A stretch of DNA of 64,000 nucleotides. It comes from Octopus sinensis (lineage: Eukaryota). The stretch is from positions 204,476,001 through 204,540,000 of the forward strand of contig NC_042998.1 of assembly GCF_006345805.1 (NCBI RefSeq). The letters run 5' to 3'. How positions within the stretch are numbered: position 1 is the first letter of the stretch; the number at the start of each line of letters is the position of its first letter. The notes under the pieces are model-generated. The model saw only the letters and a list, made by a program, of their open reading frames with translations. It searched no databases and was not told the origin of the DNA. This document shows, in pieces, positions 267-61,979 of this stretch. The position numbers and the translations under genes were made by a program.

Positions 267-1414
267 GCATCCTTTTTGTCTCGGGAGACAATGGAGTTGC
301 GCATAAAATAATCTAGTCCAGCTTTTACATTTCATGTCCTGATACATTTCCTGCTGTGGCTGTGTAGTCCTATCCTGGACAAACACTCCCTCTGGCAGGT
401 GCCGCAAATGTAGCAAAGACTGTTCCTGGCTGGTTGTAATGCCATACTTTCTTGTTGACATCTTGTCTTTCCATTTCTCCTCTCTCTCTCTCTGTCACTC
501 CTTTGTATTCCCTCTTTTACGGTACATCGCCAATCTCCACGGTTGCTGGCAACTGCTTCCCAACTGCTAATATTGATGTTGCAGGCCTTCATGTCCCTTT
601 TGCAAACATCCTTGTATCGTAAGAACGGTCTTCCCACAGACCTAGTGCCCCTAGCAAGATCTCCGTAGAGTATGTCCTTGGGGATTCTGTCATCTTCCAT
701 ACGGCTAACATGTCCAAGCCATCTCATACGTCTTTGTGTGAGGAGTGTAAACATGCTTGGTATTCCTGCTTGCTTGAGGACATCTTTGTTGAGGACATGA
801 TTCTGCCATTTGATGCCAAGAATTTTCCAGAGGCAGCGCAGGTGAAAGATATTTAGGTGACGCTCTTGGCATGTGTATGGCGTCCAAGTCTCACTGCCAT
901 ACAGTAGAGTGCTAAGTACACATGCCTGGTAAATCTTAATTTTTGTGGTCTTGGTCAGCTTATTGTTGTCCCAAGCCCGTTTGGAGAGTTGGGCCATCGC
1001 AGCAGCTGCCTTGCCAATGCGTATATTGAGCTCAGCATTAAGGGATAGGTTGTAGGTGACGGTAGAGCCAAGATAGGTAAACTTCTCCACCTCATGTAGT
1101 CTGTGGTCTCCAATATGTATGTTTGGGATGTCCGGTGTAGCTTGACCCATGATGTTGGTCTTCTTGAGGCTGATAACTAAGCCAAAGTCATTACATGCTT
1201 GCTCAAAACTGTTGATGAGCCTTTGTAGAGCTTCTTCTGTGTGTGATACCAGAGCGGCATCATCAGCAAATAGCATCTCCTTGATCAGGACGCTTCTGAT
1301 TTTGTCTTGGCATGCAGGCGCGAGAGATTGAACAGTTTCCCGTCACTTCTACTGTGCAGAAACATTCCATCATCTGATGTCTGAAAGGCATGTGAGAGCA
1401 GCAGCGAGAAGATG
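261..1414 (-). mobile_element. 5'-truncated RTE-clade LINE, BovB-like, inserted in a (TA)n tract
   Basis: ORF 332-1276 encodes the RT C-terminal part (LFADD, FTYLGS, IYQACVLSTLLYGSETW, RMRWLGHVSRM, GRPFLRYKDVCKRD) and a CxxC-type C-terminus (CGTCQRECLSRIGLHSHSRKC). Upstream residues DGKLFNLSRL lie in another frame after a 1-nt deletion near 1300. (TA)n flanks both ends. Confidence 0.92.
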
Positions 1415-13160: not shown

Positions 13161-14586
13161 CCCGGTTTCAATCAAATTTTCAAAAAAAAAGACCACTACA
13201 GTAAATACCAGACTTCAAAAAAAAACAATAAGACCCAGGGTCAATTCTTCAAGATAGTGCTCAAGTAAAAGAACTAAAGAACTAACACATAAACAAAACC
13301 AAAACAAGCAAATACATTATTATATATCTTATATATGTATATATTATGATTATTATATATATAATATAAATATAAAAAATATATGTTATGTATGCATATA
13401 TATATATATAATATATAAATATAAAAAACATTATATATATATATATTATATATATATATAAATATATCTATATATATAAGAAACATATATATATATAAGA
13501 AACACATATATATATATAAGAAACACATATAATATATATAAAAACATATATATATTATATAAATATAAAAAACACATATATATATATATATAAATATAAA
13601 AACATATTATAATATATATATAAATATAAAAAACATATATATATATATAAATATAAAAAACATATATATATATATAAATATAAAAAACATATATATATAT
13701 ATATATAAATATAAAAAACATATATATATATAAATAAAAAACATATATATATATATAAATATAAAAAACTATATATATATATATAAATATAAAAAACATA
13801 TATATATCTATATAATATAAAAAACATATATATATATATAAATATAAAAAACATATATCATCATCATCATCATCATCATTTAGCGTCCCCGTTTTCCATG
13901 CTAGCATGGGTTGGACCAATATAATATATATATATATAAAAAAATATATATATATATATAAATATAAAAAACATATATATATATATAAATATAAAAAACA
14001 TATATATATATAATATAAAAAACATATATATATAAATATAAAAAACATATATATATATATAATATAAAAAAACATATATATATATAAATATAAAAACATA
14101 TATATATTATATAATATATATAAAAAACATATATATATAATATATAAATATAAAAAACATATATATATATATATATATAAATATAAAAAACATATATATA
14201 TATATATATAAATATAAAAAACATATATATATATATATAAATATAAAAACCATATATATATATATAAATATAAAAACAATCATATATAATATATATAATA
14301 TAAAAACATATATATATATATATTAAATATAAAAAACATATATATATATATAATATATAAAAACATATATATATATATATAAATATAAAAACATATATAT
14401 ATATATAATATAAAAAACATATATATATATAAATATAAAAACATATATATATATATATAAATATAAAAAACATATATATATATATAAATATAAAAAACAT
14501 ATATATATATAAATATAAAAAACATATATATATATAAATATAAAAAACATATATATATATATATAAATATAAAAACATATAATATA

Positions 14587-14885
14587 TCTCTCTATATATA
14601 AACGGCAGTTTGTCTGTGTGTGTTTCTGTGTGTCTGTTAGGTTGTACCCTCACCCTGACCACGGCTTTCAACCGATTCTGATGAAATTTGACACACACAT
14701 AGCCCAATGTCATAATTCAAAACTAACGCAGCGAAAATTTTGAAAAGTTCCCCCAGTTCTGAAAAAAATCGATAAATTCGACATGGGGTCGAGAATCAGA
14801 AACACAAAGTTTGGCTATAACTCTCTAAAAATGCTTTATAGTTATTTCCCTTACAAACCCGAGCACCGCCGGGCGATACTGCTAG
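14587..14885 (+). mobile_element. Non-autonomous Helitron (~300 bp)
   Basis: 5' TC(TCTCTATATATAAA), 3' CTAG preceded by hairpin CCCG-AGCACCGC-CGGG, inserted between A and T with no TSD. Confidence 0.85.
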
Positions 14886-16242
14886 TATATAAAATATAAA
14901 AACATATATATATATATATAATATAAAAAACATATATATATATATAAAATAAAAAAAAAAATATATAAAAAAAATAATATATATAAAAAACTATATATAT
15001 ATAAATATAAAAAACTATATATATATAAATATAAAAACATATATATATATATAAATATAAAAAACATATATATATATATAAATATAAAAACATATAGATA
15101 TATAAATATAAAAATACAAAAAAAAATATAAATATATATATATATAAATATAAAAAACATATATATATATAATATAAAAACATATATATATATATATAAA
15201 TATAAAACACATATATATATATATAAATATAAAAAACATATATATATATAAATATAAAAACATATATATATATAAATATAAAAAACATATATATATATAA
15301 TATAAAAACATCTATATATAATATAAATATAAAAACATATATATATATAAATATAAAAAACATATATATATATATATAAATATAAAAAACATATATATAT
15401 ATATAAATATAAAAAACATATATATATATAAATATAAAAAACATTATATATATATATAAAAAACATATATATATAATATAATATAACATATATATATTAT
15501 AAATATAAAAAACATATATATATATATAAATATAAAAAACATATATATATATATATAAATATAAAAAACATATATATATATATATAAATATAAAAAACAT
15601 ATATATATATATAATATAAAAACATATATATATATATAAATATAAAAAACATATATATATATATATAAATATAAAAAACATATATATATAATATAAAAAA
15701 CATATATATATATATAAATATAAAAAACATATATATATATATAAATATAAAAACATATATATATATAAATATAAAAAATATATATATATATAAATATAAA
15801 AAACATATATATATATATATAAATATAAAAAACATATATATATATATAAATATAAAAAAACATATATATATATATAAATATAAAAAACATATATATATAT
15901 AAAATAAAAAAACATATTATATATATATAAATATAAAAAACATATATATATATATATAAATATAAAAAACATATATATATATATAAATATAAAAACATAT
16001 ATATATATATAAATATAAAAACATATATATATATATAAATATAAAAAACATATATATATATAAATATAAAAACACTATATATATATATAAATATAAAAAA
16101 CATATATATATATATAATATAAAAAACAATATATATATATAAATATAAAAAACATATATATATATATAAATATAAAAAACATATATATATATAATATAAA
16201 AAACATTATATATATATATAATATAAAACACATATATATATA

Positions 16243-16539
16243 TCTCTCTATATATAAACGGCAGTTTGTCTGTGTGTGTTTCTGTGTGTCTGTTTAGGTT
16301 GTACCCTCACCCTGACCACGGCTTTCAACCGATTCTGATGAATTTTGACACACACATAGCCCAATGTCATAATTCAAAACTAACGCAGCGAAAATTTTGA
16401 AAAGTTCCCCCAGTTCTGAAAAAAATCGATAAATTCGACATGGGGTCGAGAATCAGAACACAAAGTTTGGCTAACTCTCTAAAAATGCTTTATAGTTATT
16501 TCCCTTACAAACCCGAGCAACGCCGGGCGATACTGCTAG
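16243..16539 (+). mobile_element. Non-autonomous Helitron, near-identical second copy
   Basis: Same termini and body as 14587-14885 with about five small differences; A|T junction. Confidence 0.85.
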
Positions 16540-18779
16540 TATATAAAATATAAAAAACATATTATATATATAAATATAAAAAACATAATAATATATATAT
16601 ATAATATAAAAAACATATATATATATATATAAATATAAAAAACATATATATATATAAATATAAAAACATATATATATATATAAATATAAAAACATATATA
16701 TATATATAAATATAAAAAACATATATATATATAAATATAAAAAAACATATATATATATATATAAATATAAAAAACATATATATATCAATATAAAAACATA
16801 TATATATATATATAAATAAAAAACATATATATATATATAAATATAAAAAACATTATATATTATAAATATAAAAACATATATATATATAAATATAAAAAAC
16901 ATATATATATATAATATAAAAAAACATATATATATATATAAATATAAAAAACATATATATATATAAATATAAAAAACATATATATATATATAATATAAAA
17001 AACATCTATATATATATAAATATAAAAACATATATTATAATAAATATAAAAACATATATATATATAAATATAAAAACATATATATATTATAAATATAAAA
17101 AACATATATATATATATATAAATATAAAAAACATATATATATATATAAATATAAAAAACATATATATATATATATAAATATAAAAAACATATATATATAT
17201 ATAAATATAAAAAACATATATATATAGATATAAATATAAAAAACATATATATATATATAATATAAAAAACATATATATATATATATAAATATAAAAAACA
17301 TATATATATATATAAATTAAAAAACATAATATATATATATAATATAAAAAACATATATATATATATAAATATAAAAACATATATATATATAATATAAAAA
17401 ACATATATATATATATAAATATAAAAAACATATATATATTATATAAATATAAAAAACATATTATATATATAAATATAAAAAACATATATATATATATAAA
17501 TATAAAAAACATATATATATATATAAATATAAAAAACATATATATATATATATAAATATAAAAAATATATATATATCTAAATATAAAAAACATATATATA
17601 TATCTATAAATATAAAAAACATATATATATATATAAATATAAAAACATATATATATATATAAATATAAAAAACATATATATATATAAATATAAAAACATA
17701 TAATATATATATAAATATAAAAAACATATATATATATATAAATATAAAAACATATATATATATATATAAATATAAAAAACATATATATATAAATATAAAA
17801 AACATATATATATATATAAATATAAAAAACATATATTATATTATAAATATAAAAAACATATATATATATATTAAATATAAAAAACATATATATATATATA
17901 ATATAAAAAACATATATATTATATATAAATATAAAAAACATATATATATAATAAATATACAAAACATATATATATATATAAATATAAAAAATATATATAT
18001 ATATAAATATAAAAACATATATATATATATAAATATAAAAAACATATATATATATATAAATATAAAAAACATATATATATATATAAATATAAAAACATAT
18101 ATATATATATAAATATAAAAAACATATATATATATATAATATAAAAAAACATATATATATATATAAATATAAAAAACTATATATATATATAAATAAAAAA
18201 ACATATATATATATATAATATAAAAAACATATATATATATATAATATAAAAAACATATATATATATAAATATAAAAACATATATATATATATAAATATAA
18301 AAAACTATATATATATATAAATATAAAAAACATATATATATATATAAATATAAAAAACATATATATATATATAAATATAAAAAACATATATATATATATA
18401 AATATAAAAAACATATATTATATATAAATATAAAAAACATATATATATATAAATATAAAAAACATATATATATATATAAATATAAAAACATATATATATA
18501 TAATATATTATGTGGCAATGTCCGCATCACAGTCATCATCATGTGGAAACGGATTTGTAATTTAAATGCAGAAATCTAATTTTTTTATAAATGGCAGAGA
18601 GATAGATAGAAAAAGATAAAGAGTAAGAGAAAGTGAGGGAAAGTCTGAGAGAAAGGAAGAGTAAGAGAGTGGGAAAATGAGAAAGGATAGAGAAAGAAAG
18701 AAGGAGAATGTGGCGATAAGAAACAGAAAGTAACAACCACACCCTCACCCGCGCGTAGAGTGGGTCACCTTAAGCTAGT

Positions 18780-27189: not shown

Positions 27190-27680
27190 TCATCATCATT
27201 TAATGTACATTTTCCATGCTGGCATGGGTTGGACGGTTCAACTGAGGTCTGGAGAGCCATGAGGCTGCACCAGGCTCCAGTCTGATCTGGCAGTGTTTTT
27301 GCAGCTGGATGCCCTTCCTAATGCCAACCACTCCGAGTGTGTAGTGGCACAGGAGCCAGTCAAGTGGGCTTGGCATTGATCACGTTTGGATGGTGCTTTT
27401 CATGTACCACCAGTACAGGGGGTGGGGCGAACCAGGAGGCACTGGCATCGGCCACATTCGGTTAGTGCTTTTTACGTGCCACCAGCACGGAGGGGGGGGG
27501 GCAGTCAGGGGACACTGGCATCGGCCACATTCGGTTGGTGTTTTTTATGTGCCACCAGCAGAGGAGCCAGTTGGGGGGCACTGGGATCGGCCACATTCAG
27601 TTTGTGCTTTTTATGTGCCACCAGCACAGGGGGTGGGGCCAGCCAGGAGGCACTGGCATCGGCCACATTCAGATGGTGCT
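27190..27680 (-). mobile_element. RTE 3' UTR fragment with internal tandem repeats
   Basis: CATCATCATTTAATGTAC..CCATGCTGGCATGGGTTGGACGG tail plus repeated GGCACTGGCATCGGCCACATTC units. Confidence 0.75.
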
Positions 27681-42074: not shown

Positions 42075-43200
42075 GTGTGTGTGTGGCAGATGTGCAAGAA
42101 CATAGAGGAAATGGATTTCCTCAAATGCCAAAGGGGATCCTTAGAGGTAGTAGATAGATTCTGTTACCTAGGTGACAAAATTAACAGTAGAGGAGAATGC
42201 TCTGAAAGTGTAATAACTAGAATAAGAAGTGGTTGGAGAAAGTTCAAAGTTATTAGTTTTGTTGATAACAAAGGGCCTCTCTGTTAGAAAGAAGGGCTGA
42301 TTGTATGATATTTTGTATGAATAGCAGTGAAAAAAGGGTCATGAATGGAGAAGGCAGAGAGAGGAATGAAGTTAGAATGCTCTGGTAGAAGAGCAACATC
42401 ATCTGTGCATGTATGAGGAATCCAGAGTGCAAGAAAGGAGACTGTACTGGTTTCGTCAGCTGATGGATAAGAGCAATAGTATAAAGAAGTGACCGAGACT
42501 TTTGGAAATATGCTGTGCGTGAGAAGACCCAGCAAGCCAAATGAGACCATAATCTCGTGGCCTATGCCAAGAGTGTAACCAGCCCACTTATGCGTACCTT
42601 TTCCTTCTTTGGACACTAAAACTCTGCTTGCGAAGACCTGTTGAGGCAAGTGAAATCAAAATCAAAATCAATGACTGGCATCTGTGCTAGCAGGGTGCAA
42701 AGAGCACTATACGAGTGTGACCATTGACAGAGTGGCTAACCGGCTTCTGTGCCAGTGGCACTTAAAAAGCACCATTCGAGCGTGATCGTTACCAGTGTTG
42801 CCTTACTGGCACTCAAGCCCCGTGCTAAAAGGGTGCTAAGAGCACCATCCGAGCGTGATCATTGCCAGAGCAGCTATCTGGCCTCCATGCTGGTGGCATG
42901 TAAAAGACACCATTCGAGTGTGATCGTTACCAGCATCACCTTACTGGCACCTGTGCAGGTGGCATGTGTAAAAGATTCGAGCGAGGTCGTTGCCAGTACC
43001 ACCCGAATGGCCCCATGCCCATGGCACATAAAAGCACCTGCTACACTCTCGGAATGGTTGGCGTTAGAAAGGGCATCCAGCTGTAGAAACTCTGCCAGAT
43101 CAAGATTGAAACCTGGTGCAGCCATCTGGTTCGCCAGCCCTCAGTCAATCATCCAATCCATGCTAGCATGGAAAGCGGACGTTAAACAATGATGAGGATG
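42075..43200 (+). mobile_element. RTE LINE (second family) decayed ORF2 end plus long 3' UTR
   Basis: LEVVDRFCYLGDKI..ITRIRSGWRKF remnants run into GAGAAGACCC.. UTR, tandem sub-repeats and the GGACGTTAAAC(A/G)ATGATG tail. Confidence 0.8.
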
Positions 43201-44818: not shown

Positions 44819-45534
44819 TAATCGAACCGCCCAACCCTTGAATATGACATGTCCCTTATTTCCAATTTTGCATGGAAACACATCCAGCCATGCAGAAGAA
44901 TTATTTTGCTTGGTAAGAGTTGATGGCTACGAGTGTGTGTGTGAGTGTGTCTATTCATATATGAATCTATACAGGTACACCTGTGTATAGATACATCACT
45001 CAAACACACAAAAATATATAAAGACACACACACACACAGGTATATGATGGCAGTCATTAGATTACTTTGTGGTAATCATTCCAGTTCTCCATGCGCTTAG
45101 TTGGTCATCATGTTGGAGTCGATAGATAAAGTATTAGTCATGTGGCGGAGTCGATAGATTCTTTTCTGTCTGTCTGTCTGTCTCTGCCGAAAGAAATCAA
45201 CAGCGGTCAGACTTCGAGATGTCCTTCCTACGACTACAGCAAAGGGTTGAGGGTGGGTACGGAGGACTGCAAAAAGAAACAGGTTACTAATTCATTCTTC
45301 CTATTTGTCTGATTCACATAAACTCATAGCACCGACTACCTAGTTAGTCTTTGAGCAAACTCGGTCAATTCAATATCTCACTGTCCACTGAGACAGACTG
45401 AAATGGCATTGCCAAGGTTCGTATACACCCGTCTGCTCTGCGTGGGTGGATAGAATAATTCTGGAGTTAAAAGCAAATCCAGTAATAACATCATCGCTTG
45501 CACAAACATAGTGTGTTTTGTTTATACATATAAT

Positions 45535-47997
45535 ATATATATAGACATATATACACATATATATATACACATACACACATATATATATATACATACATAC
45601 ACACACATATATATATATACTCACATATATATATATACTCACATATATATATATATACTCACATATACATACATATATATATACATACATACATATACAC
45701 ATACATATATACATACATACATACATATATACATACATACATATACACATACATACATATACATATATACACATACATACATATACATATATACACATAC
45801 ATACATATATACACATACATACATATATACACATACATACATATATACATATACATACATATATATATATATACATACATACATATATATACATACATAT
45901 ATGTATATATATACATACATACATACATATATGTATATATATACATACATACATACATATATGTATATATATACATACATACATACATATATGTATATAT
46001 ATACATACATACATACATATATGTATATATATACATACATACATACATATATGTATATATATACATACATACATACATACATATATGTATATATATATAC
46101 ATACATACATATATGTATATATATATACATACATACATATATGTATATATATATACATCAAAATAGATGAACATCAATGGAATTTGTATCTTTGTGGTTC
46201 CAGTACCGGTGGCACACAAGAAAACCATCCGATCGTGGCCGTTCGCAGCCACATCTGGCACCTGTGTCGGTGGCACATAAAGACACCATCCGAAGACCCG
46301 GCGACGTAGACAGTCCCCTGTGCATACCTTCCTTCTTGTGACACTTGTGAAGACCTGTTGAGGCAAGTGAAAATCAAATCAAATCAAATCAAAACAAATC
46401 AAAATAGATGAACATAAATGGAATTTGTATCTTTGTGGTACCAGTGCCGGTGGCACACAAGAAAATCATCCGAACGTGGCCGTAGCCAGTACCGCATAGA
46501 CTGGCCTCCGTGCTTTGGGGACGTAACAAACACCATCCGATCGTGGCCGTCCGCCAGCCTCATCTGGCACCTGTGTCGGTGGCACATAAAAACACCATCC
46601 GAGCGTGGCCGTCTGCCAGCCTCGTCTGGCACCTGCCAGCCTCATCTGGCACCTGTGTCGGTGGCACATAAAAACACCATCCGAGCGTGGCCGTCTGCCA
46701 GCCTCGTCTGGCACCTGTGTCGGTGGCACATAAAAACACCATCCGAGCGTGGCCGTTCGCCAGCCTCGTCTGGCACCTGTGTCGGTGGCACATAAAATCA
46801 CCCACTACACTCTCGGAGTGGTTGGCGTTAGGAAGGGCATCCAGCTGTAGAAACACTGCCAGATCTGACTGGCCTGGTGCAGCCTTCGGGCTCCCCAGAC
46901 CCCAGTTGAACCGTCCAACCCATGCTAGCATGGAAAACGGACGCTAAATGATGATGATGATGATGATACATATATGTATATATATACATACATACATATA
47001 TGTATATATATACATACATACATACATATATGTATATATATATACATACATACATACACATATGTATATATATACATACATACATACACATATGTATATA
47101 TATACATACATACATACACATATGTATATATATACATACATACATACACATATGTATATATATACATACATACATACACATATGTATATATATACATACA
47201 TACATACACATATGTATATATATACATACATACACATATGTATATATATACATACATACATACACATACGTATATATATACATACATACATACACATACG
47301 TATATATATACATACATACACACACACACATACGTATATATATACATACATACACACACACACATACGTATATATATACATACATACACATATATATATA
47401 TACATACATACATACACATATATATATATACATACATACATACACATATATATATATACATACATACATACACATATATATATATACATACATACATACA
47501 CATATATATATATACATACATACATACATACATACACATATATATATATACATACATACATACATACACATATATATATATACATACATACATACATACA
47601 CATATATATATATACATACATACATACATACACATATATATATACATACATACATACATACACATATATATATATACATACATACATACACATATATATA
47701 TATACATACATACATACACATATATATATATACATACATACATACACATATATATATAATACATACATACATACACATATATATATATATATATACATAC
47801 ATACACATATATATATATACATACATACATACCATATATATATATATATACATACACATATATATATACATACACATATATATATACATACATACACATA
47901 TATATATATATATACATACATACATACACATATATATACATACATACATACACATATATATATACATACATACACATATATATATACATACATACAT

Positions 47998-48066
<69 letters not shown>

Positions 48067-48370
48067 CATATAATATATATATATATATATATACATACAT
48101 ACACTATATATATACATACATACACATACATACATACACCATATATATATACATACTACACATATATATATATATATATACATACATACACATATATATA
48201 TACATACATACACATATATATATACATACATACACATATATATATATATATATATATACATACATACACATATATATATACATACATACACATATATATA
48301 TACATACATACACATATATATATATATATATATATACATACATACACATATATATATATATATATACATA

Positions 48371-48401
<31 letters not shown>

Positions 48402-48530
48402 ACATATATATATATATATACATACATACACATATATATATATAATATATATATACATACACATATAATATATATATATATACATACATACACATATATA
48501 TATATATATAATATATATATATACATACAT

Positions 48531-48571
<41 letters not shown>

Positions 48572-49592
48572 CATACACATATTATATATACATACATACA
48601 CATATATATATATACATACATACATACACATATATATATATACATACATACATACATACACATATATATACATACATACATACATACACATATATATATA
48701 TACATACATACATACACATATATATATATACATACATACATACATATATATATATATACATACATACATACATATATATATATATACACATACATACACA
48801 TATATATATACATACACATACATACACATATATATATACATACACATATATATATAACATACATACACATATAATATACATACATACACATATATTATAT
48901 ATACATACATACACATATATATATATACATACCACATATATATATACATACATACACATATATATATATACATACATACACATATATATATATACATACA
49001 TACACATATATATATAATACATACATACACATATATATATATACATACATACACATATATATATACATACTACACATATATATATATACATACACATATA
49101 ATATACATACATACACATATATATATACATACATACACATATATATATACATACATACACATATATATATACATACATACACATATATATATACATACAC
49201 ACATATAATATATACATACATACACATATATATATATATACTACATACACATATATTATATACATACATACACATATATATATATACATACATACACATA
49301 TAATATATATACATACATACACATATATATTATATACATACATACACATATATATATATACATACATACACATATATTATATATACATACATACAATATA
49401 TATATATACATACATACACATATCTATATATATACATACATACACATATTATATACATACATACACATATATATATACATACCATACACATATATATATA
49501 TACATATATATACATATATATATATATATACATATATATACATATATATATATGTACATATATACATATATATACATATATGCGTGTGTGTG

Positions 49593-49627
<35 letters not shown>

Positions 49628-49652
49628 TGTGTATATATATGTACATATATAT

Positions 49653-49685
<33 letters not shown>

Positions 49686-51946: not shown

Positions 51947-54900
51947 TTAAAGAGAAGATGATACAGCAAGATTCTGTCGAATCAACTCAAGGCTGTGTTC
52001 TTTCTCCCGCAGAATCTCCCTCAAGCGGCGAATCCGTTCCTCCTGGGGTGTCTCCCCAGAGAGAGTCACCGATGACGTGGAGGCACTTGGAAGTTCTAGA
52101 CTGTTGTGTTTTGAAGAGCTGACATGTGAAGAATAACAAGAAGATGAGGAGGTGGAGGGGGAGGCAGGGAGCAGAGGAGAAAGGTTGGAAGGAGATGGAG
52201 TGCTGTATGAAAGGTCGTCAGTCATAGACGATGAGGATGATGTTTGAGTTTCTAAAGGAAAACCTGTTATCTTGACAGCTGCCTTTTTACCAACTGTTTT
52301 CTTTTTACAGTTCAATTTTTTACCAGACCCTGACAAGGTAAACTTGTATAATTTAGAAGAATCACTTAAATGACCAACGTCTTTTCGTGTGGAGGCTAAG
52401 TTTTTAAAAGCAACATTCTCTGGGCAAAGCCCAAATTTCTCTTCTTTGATTGATGACAGGGAAGTCTGTTGGTTGATGGGAGCTAATAACGAGACAGATG
52501 AATCAGGATTGATGTCCCCTTCGTAACCATATTTTACCGGTTCCTTTTTGATATTCTGAACAAGATTTAAGGAATCTGGTACACTAGTAGGAGGTAAAGT
52601 GATGAGAGGGTTTAATGGAAGGATGGATACAGGAGGAGGATGTTTCACTGGTTCATCGCCATAACCAGAAGTTATGGGTTCAGATTTGATATGAACCGTA
52701 TTAGGTTGCAGAGAAAGAACATTATCAATTCGCAGACCTGAAGAATTACAACTCTGATATGATTGATCAACTACAGTTCCAACAGAAGATGCCACTTTCG
52801 GTGTTACCATAGTTACATTTGGTACAACAGGTGTTGAGCAAGATGGTAACAAGCGATGGCCATTTACTGGATCGACTTTGGAAATTTCAAGAGCTGTACC
52901 GGTCGCTCGTAATACGGTAGCTAATTCCGATTTAGAATCAAAAAGTTGGATTTTATTACTCCCTTCCTTCATATAATACAGACAATTGTTATTCTCGGGA
53001 GTTGGAACATGACTTTTCATCTTCTTCGGATTATCACTGGCAACCATTCCGCTTTTTTTCTCTTTCAGAACAGATTTGGATTTCTTCCGATATTTCCTAA
53101 CTGGAGGAATGAAATCAATATCTTCTTCAAAACCAGTATGTTTTTTTGGTCTACGTATTCTTTTACCAGTAATTATAGGTGGGGCTTCCAGAGTTGGTAC
53201 CGTTTCTTTTGTAGAGCTTGGAAGTGGATCTGCAGATGGAGTAGTAATAACATCATTCAAAGACTTAGAAGCATTGTTAGTTTGGAAAACTATTTGGGAT
53301 CCATTATTAGTATTTGATACGACTGTTGGAGGTGGACCATCCTTAGTATTTACAATAAAAGATTTTGGCATTTTAACTTGCATAGAATTCTGGTTGAAAC
53401 TCTTTTCAAAAATATAGGCAGATCTGCTGGCTTTGCCACCTTGTGAAGGAATGGCCACTGTTTTATCAGACAATGGAATGAAAACATATTTACCCATAGG
53501 TAGCGAATGGGCAGCACACTGCAGCTCATCTGCAAGACGAGTGGAACTATTTCCTTGAGGTATGACAGAACCTAAAGAAGTCACTGAAGACACACTTTCC
53601 AAGGTGCTGGCAATCGATTTAGCAGACTCTTTCTTCAGATTAGGATTAGTGACAGCTGTTACCTTTGTCTGACCATTACGCCGTCGTATGTCAACAGAAA
53701 TGTACTTCGGATCCTGTTCACTTTTATCAGAACTGCTAGAATTCTTTGGTGAAGCATTTTCTTTCTGTGAATTGTTCAGCTGAGAATCGGTCATGTTGAA
53801 GTTGTTATCCAAATCTTGTTCGACATTTGGTGGTGATTTTGTTGTTAGAGTTTTCTCATGGTCAGTGCTCGGGTGTTTCGTGTGACTGGCCGAATCTATG
53901 CTGATGTCCACACTGACCTCCTCGTTTGCATTTGTCAGCTGCACAGGAGAGGTGAACGCCTCGTTGTTCATGCTGACGACAACGGTCCGTGGACTTAGCA
54001 AGGAACTCGTTGACTGCGGAGAATTGATTAAAACTCTTTGGAATTTAGATTCATTTGGGAGGTTGTCATTTTCAGCAAAGCCATCTATTTGAGGTTGTTC
54101 TACATGGAAGAAACCGGAATCTGAAGAAGATTTAACAAATTCAGAATTTTCTCCAAGTTGTGAAGCTGTAACATCATCCTCACTGGATCGCAGCTGTTCT
54201 TCAGCCAAAGAGAAAACAGAAGAGATCTTCAATCCAAACATGCCATCGTCATCAGCGTCATCAGCATTTTCTTGCGATACTTCTTTACCATCGGAATGGC
54301 ATTCTTCCATTACAGATTCAGATTGCTGTGAGAGATTTTTAACAAAATTTGTGTCACTATTACCGATGGCTTTCCCACTATTCTCAGTTTTGTCCTGGTG
54401 AACAATGTTATCAGGATGACTCTCTGTTGGTGCTAGGTTCGTCCTCTCTGCTGCTGCTGCTGCCGTTTCGTTTGTTTGTTTGCTATGGGACTGTGTTTTG
54501 TGTTTGTTTTCATTCAAGACAGAAGAAAATCTCAACAGAGATTTGCCAGAACTATTCTGTACTTCACTGGCATCCAAAATAGTTGGAACAGGCGCCGATG
54601 ATAGAGAGGAAGAAGTCGGAGGACAAAGTTTTCTGGCAGAATCTCGTGAAAACAGTTTCACAGGGTGGACTGACCCAGAATCTGCTGCTGTTTCATCTAC
54701 TGTTGCTGCTGCTGCTGGTGTTATTGCTACTGCTGCCGGTGCTGGCGGTGTTGCTGCTGTTGATGTTGGTGGTGTTGCTGCTGCTGGTGTTGTTGTTGAT
54801 GTTACTACGGCAGTGGTCAGTGTTTTAGTAGATGTCGTAGTTGTGGTGAGTGCAGTACCAGAAGTGCGCACGTTCTGATTATTCCCTGTAGAATTAACAC

Positions 54901-55580
54901 AGGTGGTTACAGGAACATCCTTTGGTCTGTCTGTTGAAGCTGGTCCAGTTTGGGAACTATTCATATCAGACTGGCTTTTGGCTGATGTTACATTGGAACC
55001 AACAGTGGTAGCTGGAAGTATTGGTGTGGTGGTTGACTTTGTTGTAGTCGTGGTCGTAGTTGCTGTTGTGGAGACTTCAGAAGGAACAAAACTTGGCAGC
55101 AACAGTTTCAACATGTTGTCCGAGATGCCATGGTTTAGAAAAGAATTGTACGTAAGAAGATTCGAAGATTTTGTGGTGGCTTTAGTTTCAGTTGTTGTTG
55201 TTTTCGTAGTGACAATTTGGTTCGGTGAGTCAGGGGACTTTTTCTGCACAACAAACACAATCTTCTTCTTTTCGTTATCACACACAATTGTCGGTTTTGC
55301 CAGAGCTATTTCTGTTTTGCCATTCACTCCTCGACAAATCAACTTTTTCATCTCACCTTCGGGTTGATTGGGATTGGTGGCTGCTAAAAGACCATTGTAT
55401 GGAAGAATGTACTTCAACTGGCCCCCAACATAAAGAGCATATGCTTTCTGGGTATTGCTAGCCGGAGGGGTACTGCCAATAGCTTTAGAGTTAGCCGTTG
55501 TCACTTTGCTGGTTGCAGTTTGGTTCGGTGTTGGTGGCGCCTTTGAAACCGCAGTCTCAGAATGCGGCACTTTTGAAACT
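51947..55580 (-). CDS. Terminal coding exon (~1210 aa) of a large S/T-rich nuclear-type protein ending in an LRIF1-like coiled coil
   Basis: A 1219-aa stop-free frame in a genome where random ORFs are short. Polypyrimidine acceptor ttttatcctttcttttccag|A GTT TCA at 55581/55580 (phase 2) and stop at 51947. Contains basic NLS-like runs (KRIRRPKKH, RKYRKKSK), IKSEP/IKKEP/IKEE motifs and C-terminal EERIRRLREILREKEHSLELIRQNL. Confidence 0.9.
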
Positions 55581-56119
55581 CTGGAAAAGAAAGGATAAAA
55601 TAACAAAATAAGTCACAATAACAAAACATTAATGATAAATAACACAAACAAAAGTTTAACTGAAAGAAATGCCACCAAACAACTCTAGACATTAACGAGG
55701 AAGCCATTAGTAGCAACAGCATCCTCAAATCACACCCTACAGCTTCAACAAGGAAGTATAGCACATCACTATCATCTTTCCATACTGGCTGCCTTAGACA
55801 AGACTTTCTGAAGCAGCATCCTACAATGAGACACACTAACCCTAACACTAGCTTTTACTGGTTTACAAATAAAGGATAAATAAAATCTTCATATGTAGAA
55901 AAGCAGAGTTGTATGATTTGAACTAATGTTACCTCTGCCCAAATGGCATAAACAAAAAAACCAAATATACACATGCGATTTCATTCATGAGGCATTGGTC
56001 AATCAGAGGTTATAGCAGAAGATACTAACCAAAGGTACCATGCAATAGGATTGAACCCAAAGCCATGAGGTTGTGAAGCAAAGTCTTTAACCACACAGCT
56101 ATGGCTGCACCTATGTACA

Positions 56120-58883: not shown

Positions 58884-59043
58884 GCTGCATAAACTTTCTG
58901 TTTGTTTACTTTCTCAACTTTTGGTTTCCTTGGTACTCTTGGTTTGCGAACGGCTGTGGGTTTTTTAGCCACAGAATCACACCTGACAGCCATCACAGCA
59001 GCAGCAGCTTTATCAGCAGTAATAACACACCTGGAGAGTAAAT
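58884..59043 (-). CDS. Internal coding exon (DLLSRCVITADK...KPRVPRKPKVEKVNKQKVYA)
   Basis: Acceptor tttcttccag|AT TTA (phase 1) and donor GCA GC|gtaagt (phase 2). GC plus A of the terminal exon gives in-frame Ala. A second AG 13 nt downstream (59030) would change phase. Confidence 0.78.
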
Positions 59044-61644: not shown

Positions 61645-61746
61645 CTGAGAAATATTTACGACGTAACTCAGATCTCTGTACATCGCTCAGTGACTCGTCT
61701 TTGAGAGCTTCTGGGAAGGTAGAATATTTCAATTCTGTCTTTGAAT
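61645..61746 (-). CDS. Internal coding exon (SKTELKYSTFPEALKDESLSDVQRSELRRKYFS)
   Basis: Acceptor ttttcctttatttccaacag| and donor TCA G|gtacat. 102 bp with only one of three frames open, and that frame is phase 1/1, joining in frame to the 59043 acceptor. Confidence 0.75.
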
Positions 61747-61979
61747 CTGTTGGAAATAAAGGAAAAAGAGAGAATGAGCAATGCTAATCAATATTATTAG
61801 ATATTAAAAACACCGAGTCCACTCTGTAAAGTGGTTGGTACTGCAAAGGGCATCCAACCATAGAAACCATTCCAAAACAGACAAAAGGAGCCTGGTGCAG
61901 CCCTCCACCCTTGCCAGCTCCAGTGAAACTGTCCAACCCAAAGCAGATATTAAACGCACGACCTTTGAACATTAGGTCT

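Follow-up and report, generated by a model that had tools for sequence, protein, structure and literature searches.

The question raised by this locus is what kind of protein is encoded by a minus-strand gene that the databases name after flocculins and mucins. The gene lies in a stretch of 64,000 nucleotides of Octopus sinensis DNA (contig NC_042998.1, positions 204,476,001 to 204,540,000; below, "the window" means this whole 64-kb stretch), with its first coding exon outside the window. An earlier note on the same DNA had proposed that the protein is a divergent adaptor of the LRIF1 (HBiX1) type, on account of a coiled coil at its extreme C-terminus. LRIF1 has been studied as a vertebrate protein, in X-inactivation, in the silencing of Hox and clustered genes and in FSHD2 (facioscapulohumeral muscular dystrophy of type 2), and no other chromatin partner of SMCHD1 has, to our knowledge, been validated. 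The binding to SMCHD1 is made by the C-terminal coiled coil of LRIF1, via the hinge of SMCHD1 or the coiled coils flanking it (PMC4628070, PMC9226161, bioRxiv 10.1101/2025.07.08.663435); the hinge region is needed for this binding, and a recent preprint adds the short coiled coils that flank it (bioRxiv 10.1101/2025.07.08.663435). A separate PxVxL motif of LRIF1 binds HP1 and in this way links SMCHD1 to H3K9me3 chromatin (PMC4628070, PMC9226161, PMC10307901).

The element in question sits at the very end of the gene, within its giant last exon. On the minus strand, the reverse complement of 51968-52057 reads GETPQEERIRRLREILREKEHSLELIRQNL and is followed by AVSSSL and a TAA stop (TAA at 51949-51947), the codon string that ends the gene being ...GGG GAG ACA CCC CAG GAG GAA CGG ... 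GCT GTA TCA TCT TCT CTT TAA. The sequence of the motif, its coordinates, its position six residues before the stop and the presence of a pentamer PNVTM at 52808-52822 were all as the earlier note had given them. Three features are needed for what follows, in the numbering of the full-length octopus protein P0001:

51968 to 52057, minus strand: LRIF1-type C-terminal amphipathic helix or short coiled coil, GETPQEERIRRLREILREKEHSLELIRQNL, amino acids (aa) 1392-1421 of 1427.
52019 to 52027, minus strand: R1402-L1403-R1404, aligned to the R-L-K triplet of LRIF1 on the basis of the alignments and a published mutant.
51947 to 51967, minus strand: the six-residue tail AVSSSL and the TAA stop, by direct reading.

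A human LRIF1 sequence, scoring 1164 bits along the full length of the Pfam LRIF1 profile, was used as the query to retrieve 516 LRIF1 proteins from the database, and the C-termini of these proteins revealed that the human ending given in the earlier note was essentially right. When the isolated cephalopod C-termini were scanned against Pfam, LRIF1 (PF15741) came out at the top of 24,736 families, and the alignments covered profile positions 709/714-743 of 745, which places terminus on terminus. The octopus peptide aligned to positions 714-743 with 25.6 bits (E=6e-6), whereas the C-termini of two other cephalopod proteins, P0003 and P0004, reached 31.9 bits (E=7e-8) and 33.3 bits (E=3e-8), both above the curated cutoff of 27 bits; the next-best families (PHY, TPD52 and DUF4140) gave E-values of at least 0.03. 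BLASTP aligned P0003 with human LRIF1 at 17/29 identities (E=1e-7), and hhalign comparisons of the cephalopod with the mammalian LRIF1 alignments gave probabilities of 93.6-94.6% (E=2e-7 to 7e-8) over 28-31 columns, located at both C-termini. Common to LRIF1 and the octopus protein is a helix of about 30 residues at the extreme C-terminus, with the pattern ET..[DE]E[KR]IRRL[KR]..L[RK]EKE..LE..[IM]R, with an identity to human and other LRIF1 proteins of 50-65%. The identities amount to 15-17 of 29-30 residues and include charged positions outside the hydrophobic core.

An exhaustive hmmsearch with a full-length cephalopod profile, which used no word prefilter and covered 1.84 billion representative proteins, brought up five proteins at E <= 0.001. 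Three of these belong to the cephalopod family itself (two being query sequences) and one, P0127, is a spurious repeat protein. The sole credible match outside cephalopods was P0126, with 36.9 bits and a library-wide E of 1.1e-4 over residues 939-1007 of 1013. P0126 is a vertebrate protein that bears the UniRef name 'LRIF1-like' and scores 364 bits on Pfam LRIF1, and BLASTP paired P0003 with it at 17/26 identities. A word-indexed profile search restricted to the C-terminal 50 columns recovered one 47-aa fragment and not even the query proteins, and was uninformative. Searched against the PDB, the C-terminal 100 aa of the octopus protein matched nothing but a serine-rich segment of DRC10, a hit of no relevance here, and the PDB search found no solved structure of LRIF1 and none of the LRIF1-SMCHD1 complex. 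As a separate observation on P0126, its 1013 aa contain the C-terminal coiled-coil module in two copies (about 838-870 and 975-1006), with a repeated segment before each; the SMCHD1-binding end is internally duplicated in this protein.

The specificity of the match was examined in two ways. A hidden Markov model (HMM) of vertebrate LRIF1 C-termini scored the octopus 36-mer at 36.7 bits, whereas the maximum was 14.9 bits among 20,000 composition shuffles of this 36-mer and 22.5 bits among 20,000 shuffles that kept its hydrophobic register. Since both maxima lie far below the real score, the similarity is specific to LRIF1 and not that of a generic coiled coil. For a block test, ten conserved blocks were taken from the vertebrate alignment and thirteen from the cephalopod one, and the HMM of each was scored on the other family; the null came from 300 window-shuffled versions of every target protein. 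The C-terminal block reached 25-29 bits versus a null maximum of 4.4, and 19-34 bits versus 6.8 in the reverse direction, with p<1/300 in all eight comparisons. Pfam, hhalign, the exhaustive search, the shuffles and the block tests agree on an LRIF1 pattern at the same extreme C-terminal position in both families, and the resemblance of the octopus C-terminus to that of LRIF1 is real and specific.

The motif is also held firmly within the cephalopods. P0003 (1141 aa) and P0004 (1167 aa) are further orthologues, 42-45% identical to the octopus protein and probably from squid or cuttlefish-type cephalopods, and P0130 (1325 aa) is a longer member of the P0003 cluster; none of the cephalopod proteins carries a precomputed Pfam domain. 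All of them have in common about a dozen invariant blocks, between which lies variable Thr/Ser/Pro-rich spacer. The C-terminal motif is one of the best-conserved of these blocks: 25/30 of its positions are the same in five cephalopod sequences, one of which is the fragment P0125, and the flanks adjoining it are variable. It is nearly invariant across lineages about 44% identical overall. In the triplet, octopus has RLR, and P0003, P0004 and P0125 have RLK. The m1 mutant of LRIF1, in which RLK is changed to EAE (mouse R732E/L733A/K734E, within ...EKIRRLKQ...), has lost SMCHD1 binding (bioRxiv 10.1101/2024.11.18.624083). The position of this triplet is retained in cephalopods, as R1402-L1403-R1404 in octopus, a conservation at the level of sequence only.

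The likeness extends to the overall architecture. In the AlphaFold2 (AF2) model of the octopus last-exon protein, built on a 4-sequence alignment, the mean predicted local distance difference test (pLDDT) score was 31.8, and nearly all of the 28 residues with values of at least 70 fell in one helix, which spans residues 1165-1192 of the model or roughly aa 1395-1422 of P0001 and has block-mean pLDDT values of 72-95. The LRIF1 protein P0005, modeled on a 20-sequence alignment, had a mean pLDDT of 30.6 and 27 residues of at least 70, located in a helix at 734-768 with values up to 93. Both proteins are, by these models, about 97% disordered with one confident C-terminal helix, and both are long Ser/Thr-rich chains with basic clusters. 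As for the octopus protein, 46% of its residues are S, T, P, N, Q or G. Its N-terminus, MPRVKKKSVEYGNRKRRKL, is basic and not hydrophobic, and no signal peptide was found in the protein. The stretch MPRVKKKS.EYGNRKRRKL (MPRVKKKS[VI]EYGNRKRRKLAA.KRS), conserved between aa 1-30 of octopus P0001 and aa 1-30 of P0130 from the other lineage, looks like a bipartite nuclear localisation signal (NLS). Further NLS-like clusters (e.g., GKRIRRPKK) and psi-K-x-E SUMO-type sites (IKSEP, IKKEP and IKEE) are present, and from these sequence features the protein is probably nuclear.

Taken by analogy with LRIF1, these findings would be explained by an adaptor for SMCHD1, a reading to which we assign a probability of roughly 55%. 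The octopus product would be a long, intrinsically disordered, probably nuclear protein whose only confident fold, a C-terminal amphipathic helix of 28-30 residues, would be a homologue of the coiled coil with which vertebrate LRIF1/HBiX1 ends. As in LRIF1, the docking site of the helix would most likely be the short coiled coils on either side of the SMC hinge in a putative cephalopod SMCHD1-like protein. Contacts to chromatin or to other partners would come from the disordered body, which carries conserved lineage-specific blocks, basic clusters and SUMO-type sites. The role of such a protein would be that of an adaptor, bringing an SMCHD1-type compactor to silent chromatin or keeping it there. 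In several non-vertebrate animals, genes are annotated in RefSeq as SMCHD1-like; a literature search for SMCHD1 together with octopus, mollusc, invertebrate or metazoa yielded no cephalopod or mollusc data and one sea-urchin gene labelled SMCHD1. Judged by its sequence, the C-terminus is a genuine LRIF1-type module, with SMCHD1 binding as its predicted function, set on an otherwise unrecognisable, lineage-specific cephalopod scaffold. A homology by descent, in which a fast-evolving LRIF1 orthologue has kept only the partner-binding helix, would account for this arrangement.

A number of results weigh against the adaptor reading. Only about 30 of the 1427 residues match LRIF1, and the isolated octopus C-terminus falls 1.4 bits short of the curated cutoff of PF15741. 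Full-length scans of the whole octopus protein gave no Pfam LRIF1 match, and beyond the C-terminus the next-best hhalign alignment had E=0.36 even under permissive settings. Shuffled noise was not exceeded by the block HMMs of the nine remaining vertebrate LRIF1 blocks, among them the HP1-binding FGLTKDLRVCLTRIP, nor by those of the twelve other cephalopod blocks versus LRIF1. The exhaustive profile search over 1.84e9 proteins detected neither a relative of the body nor another carrier of the motif in non-cephalopod invertebrates, and no conserved canonical PxVxL motif was detected in the four cephalopod proteins. Moreover, the same kind of short charged helix can be put to use with different partners.

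We rejected homology to LRIF1 over the full length, as whole-protein Pfam, BLASTP, hhalign and reciprocal block HMMs find the C-terminus only. The octopus protein is about twice as long as LRIF1 (1427 versus about 770 aa); the N-terminal block of LRIF1 (CMYQVVQT..GKNLLQLLPIP), its central blocks and its HP1 block have no detectable octopus counterpart, whereas the octopus protein has about 12 conserved blocks of its own without LRIF1 equivalent. Because the body and the HP1 block were searched for and not found, we do not file the octopus protein as a straightforward LRIF1 member. Of the divergent LRIF1-like adaptor proposed earlier, the C-terminal 30 residues with the R-L-K/R triplet stood up, and nothing else in the protein resembled LRIF1; a divergent LRIF1 orthologue is what we infer from one 30-aa module together with the shared architecture. 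Four pairs of segments that look alike by eye were also dismissed, given that all scored at the level of the null: ISDNMLKLLLP versus the vertebrate DGKNLLQLLPIP (LxxLL-like; GKNLLQLLPIP), MFGLKISSVFSL versus FGLTKDLRVCL, HNGQTKITAV versus HNAPRKVTAV, and IKKEP.YGY versus VKKEEPIEAEYYAY.

The HP1 arm of LRIF1 was inspected in the same manner. In vertebrates the mPVL mutant V567D/L569E changes the V and L of the FGLTKDLRVCLTRIP block (bioRxiv 10.1101/2024.11.18.624083). The HMM of this block (with its L-R-V-C-L) did not exceed the null in any of the four cephalopod proteins. The invariant block DDGMFGLKISSVFSLAE, superficially similar to it, was rejected as a candidate, having its Val out of register and a score at the null. 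Among pentamers of the form [ILM]xVx[IM], only I[ST]VDI and MQVKM are conserved in all four proteins, both within probable beta-strand blocks. The remaining candidate is the one pointed out in the earlier note:

52808 to 52822, minus strand: PNVTM, candidate HP1 ligand, aa 1137-1141 of P0001, present in Octopus only.

This site reads PSVTM in O. bimaculoides and PGVNT or PAVSA in the other cephalopods, and the proposed HP1 ligand, confined to Octopus, is thus not conserved across cephalopods. Any link of the octopus protein to HP1 would be putative. A role in cephalopod sex-chromosome dosage or repeat silencing was rightly marked as speculative in the earlier note.

The adaptor reading has to be set against the annotation in force, which makes the product a secreted or cell-surface mucin- or flocculin-like glycoprotein. 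This is how RefSeq and UniRef name it ('flocculation protein FLO11-like', 'mucin-5AC'), and a Ser+Thr content of 24% with poly-T stretches is in line with the names, Ser/Thr/Pro-rich low complexity being what mucins, flocculins and the octopus protein have in common. However, Pfam scans detected no mucin or Flo11 domain, the strongly basic N-terminus MPRVKKKSVEYGNRKRRKL is unlike a hydrophobic signal peptide, several NLS-like basic clusters and SUMO-type sites are present, and the threonine-rich stretches are the least conserved parts of the cephalopod protein. Short conserved blocks together with a C-terminal helix are typical of nuclear scaffold proteins, unlike mucins or flocculins. We therefore hold a surface glycoprotein to be highly improbable; the two names are composition artefacts, and such names are typical of composition-driven automatic labelling. 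A chance resemblance of two low-complexity charged helices could be suspected from the shortness of the motif, from its richness in E, R, K and L and from the octopus peptide that, taken alone, scores just under the curated threshold of Pfam. The statistics effectively refute it, with none of the 40,000 shuffles reaching the real score, the block tests significant throughout, and E-values of 1.1e-4 library-wide over 1.84e9 proteins, 3e-8 to 6e-6 in Pfam and 7e-8 in hhalign.

A different origin of the same helix deserves more attention, unlikely as we consider it. The helix could be a short coiled coil through which the protein associates with itself or with some partner that is not SMCHD1, the likeness of the helix to LRIF1 arising by convergence or from a re-purposed ancient module; the protein as a whole could be a disordered nuclear scaffold peculiar to cephalopods and functionally unconnected with SMCHD1 or HP1. 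The limitation of the similarity to 30 residues, the lack of invertebrate intermediates in the exhaustive search and the lack of a conserved HP1 motif speak for this explanation, and the roughly 12 cephalopod-only conserved blocks would point to a set of partners of its own. It has more difficulty with the identities at charged non-core positions, which exceed what heptad periodicity and composition produce (22.5 bits at most versus 36.7), with LRIF1 as the only credible outside match among 1.84e9 proteins, with the terminal position and overall architecture that are the same as in LRIF1, and with the retention of residues needed for SMCHD1 binding. As no invertebrate intermediates were found in the exhaustive search, descent and convergence are not separable on this evidence alone, although the depth of identity to the LRIF1 C-terminus favours descent.

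With the C-terminal helix placed, the remainder of the gene can be described. The open reading frame (ORF) at 51947-55606 (minus strand, 1219 codons, closed by the TAA after AVSSSL) is the last exon of a spliced gene. In a protein search it matched at 100% P0001, the Octopus sinensis 'flocculation protein FLO11-like isoform X1' of 1427 aa, and at 89% P0002, the 'mucin-5AC' of O. bimaculoides. With tblastn, aa 215-1427 were placed on 55588-51950; a splice acceptor ttccag/A lies at 55581-55582 and a GTAAGT donor after 58885. The coding exons are:

51947 to 55580, minus strand: last coding exon (aa 217/218-1427), from the 100% match to P0001 and the acceptor ttccag/A.
58885 to 59043, minus strand: preceding coding exon (about aa 164-217), from tblastn, with acceptor and GTAAGT donor read directly.
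61646 to 61768, minus strand: upstream coding exon (about aa 126-163, with approximate boundaries), from tblastn.
Outside the window: first coding exon (aa 1 to about 122, beginning MPRVKKKSVEYGNRKRRKL...).

The cephalopod-invariant blocks outside the C-terminal helix lie within 52520-55456 on the minus strand. They include DDGMFGLKISSVFSLAE, LQCAA.SLPMG.Y.FIPL.DK.VA.PSQ and EPITSGYGDE, along with the following:

55238 to 55456, minus strand: invariant N-block NTQKAYALYVGGQLKYILPYNG...KKIVFVVQKK, weakly predicted as beta strands, with no known relative.
53402 to 53524, minus strand: invariant block LQCAAHSLPMGKYVFIPLSDKTVAIPSQ...RSAYIFEK, then MQVKM, a conserved [M]xVx[M] candidate.
53081 to 53197, minus strand: invariant basic block PTLEAPPI.TGKRIRRPKKHTGFEED..IPP.R..RKK, possibly NLS-like.
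52520 to 52732, minus strand: blocks RIDNV.SLQP..IKSEPITSGYGDE and IKKEP.KYGY, with SUMO-consensus sites.

No relative of the invariant blocks was detectable in 1.84e9 proteins, and they are presumably partner-binding motifs or small beta modules.

No other gene was found in the 64-kb window, nor within 10 kb of the P0004 locus, and synteny thus adds nothing to the comparison. Downstream of the gene, a 314-aa ORF at 332-1276 (minus strand) corresponds to the C-terminal portion of a reverse transcriptase (31.8 bits to Pfam RVT_1) and is probably a fragment of a long interspersed nuclear element (LINE)-type retroelement. Very large AT-rich micro-/minisatellite arrays occupy 13321-18508, 45523-46155 and 46966-49685, with (TA)n and higher-order units of 27-30 bp and lengths of up to 5.2 kb; they yield dozens of spurious 'YIYIYI' or 'CMYVYI' ORFs on both strands. 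Short tandem duplications with units of 62-138 bp, at 27391-27680, 42684-42950 and 46553-46802, contain a GC-richer element with ...GGCACATAAAAACACCATCCGAGCGTGGCCGT... that may be a dispersed repeat resembling a short interspersed nuclear element (SINE). Scans of the whole window with ARAGORN and Rfam turned up neither a tRNA nor an RNA family.

Regarding its place in the LRIF1 family, all Pfam-LRIF1-bearing proteins among the matches listed are vertebrate, and a literature search found no paper joining LRIF1 with invertebrates; the octopus protein may be the first LRIF1-like adaptor outside vertebrates. Extending this to the history of the system, we put forward, tentatively and with some doubt, that the LRIF1-SMCHD1 pair might predate vertebrates. 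LRIF1 would then be an ancient bilaterian protein of such rapid evolution that only the 30-residue docking helix is still recognisable, the octopus gene would be the first invertebrate LRIF1, now mislabelled, and the dozen invariant blocks would be new partner motifs that replace the HP1 and N-terminal modules of vertebrates. For annotation, the result corrects a misleading automatic label. If the proposal is true, the origin of this adaptor-compactor interface would move back to the bilaterian ancestor, and the minimal interface would be defined by a natural 'alanine scanning' that spans more than 500 million years, which is useful because the PDB search found no structure of the complex. It would also provide an entry point to SMCHD1-type silencing in an invertebrate whose genomes are large and rich in repeats.

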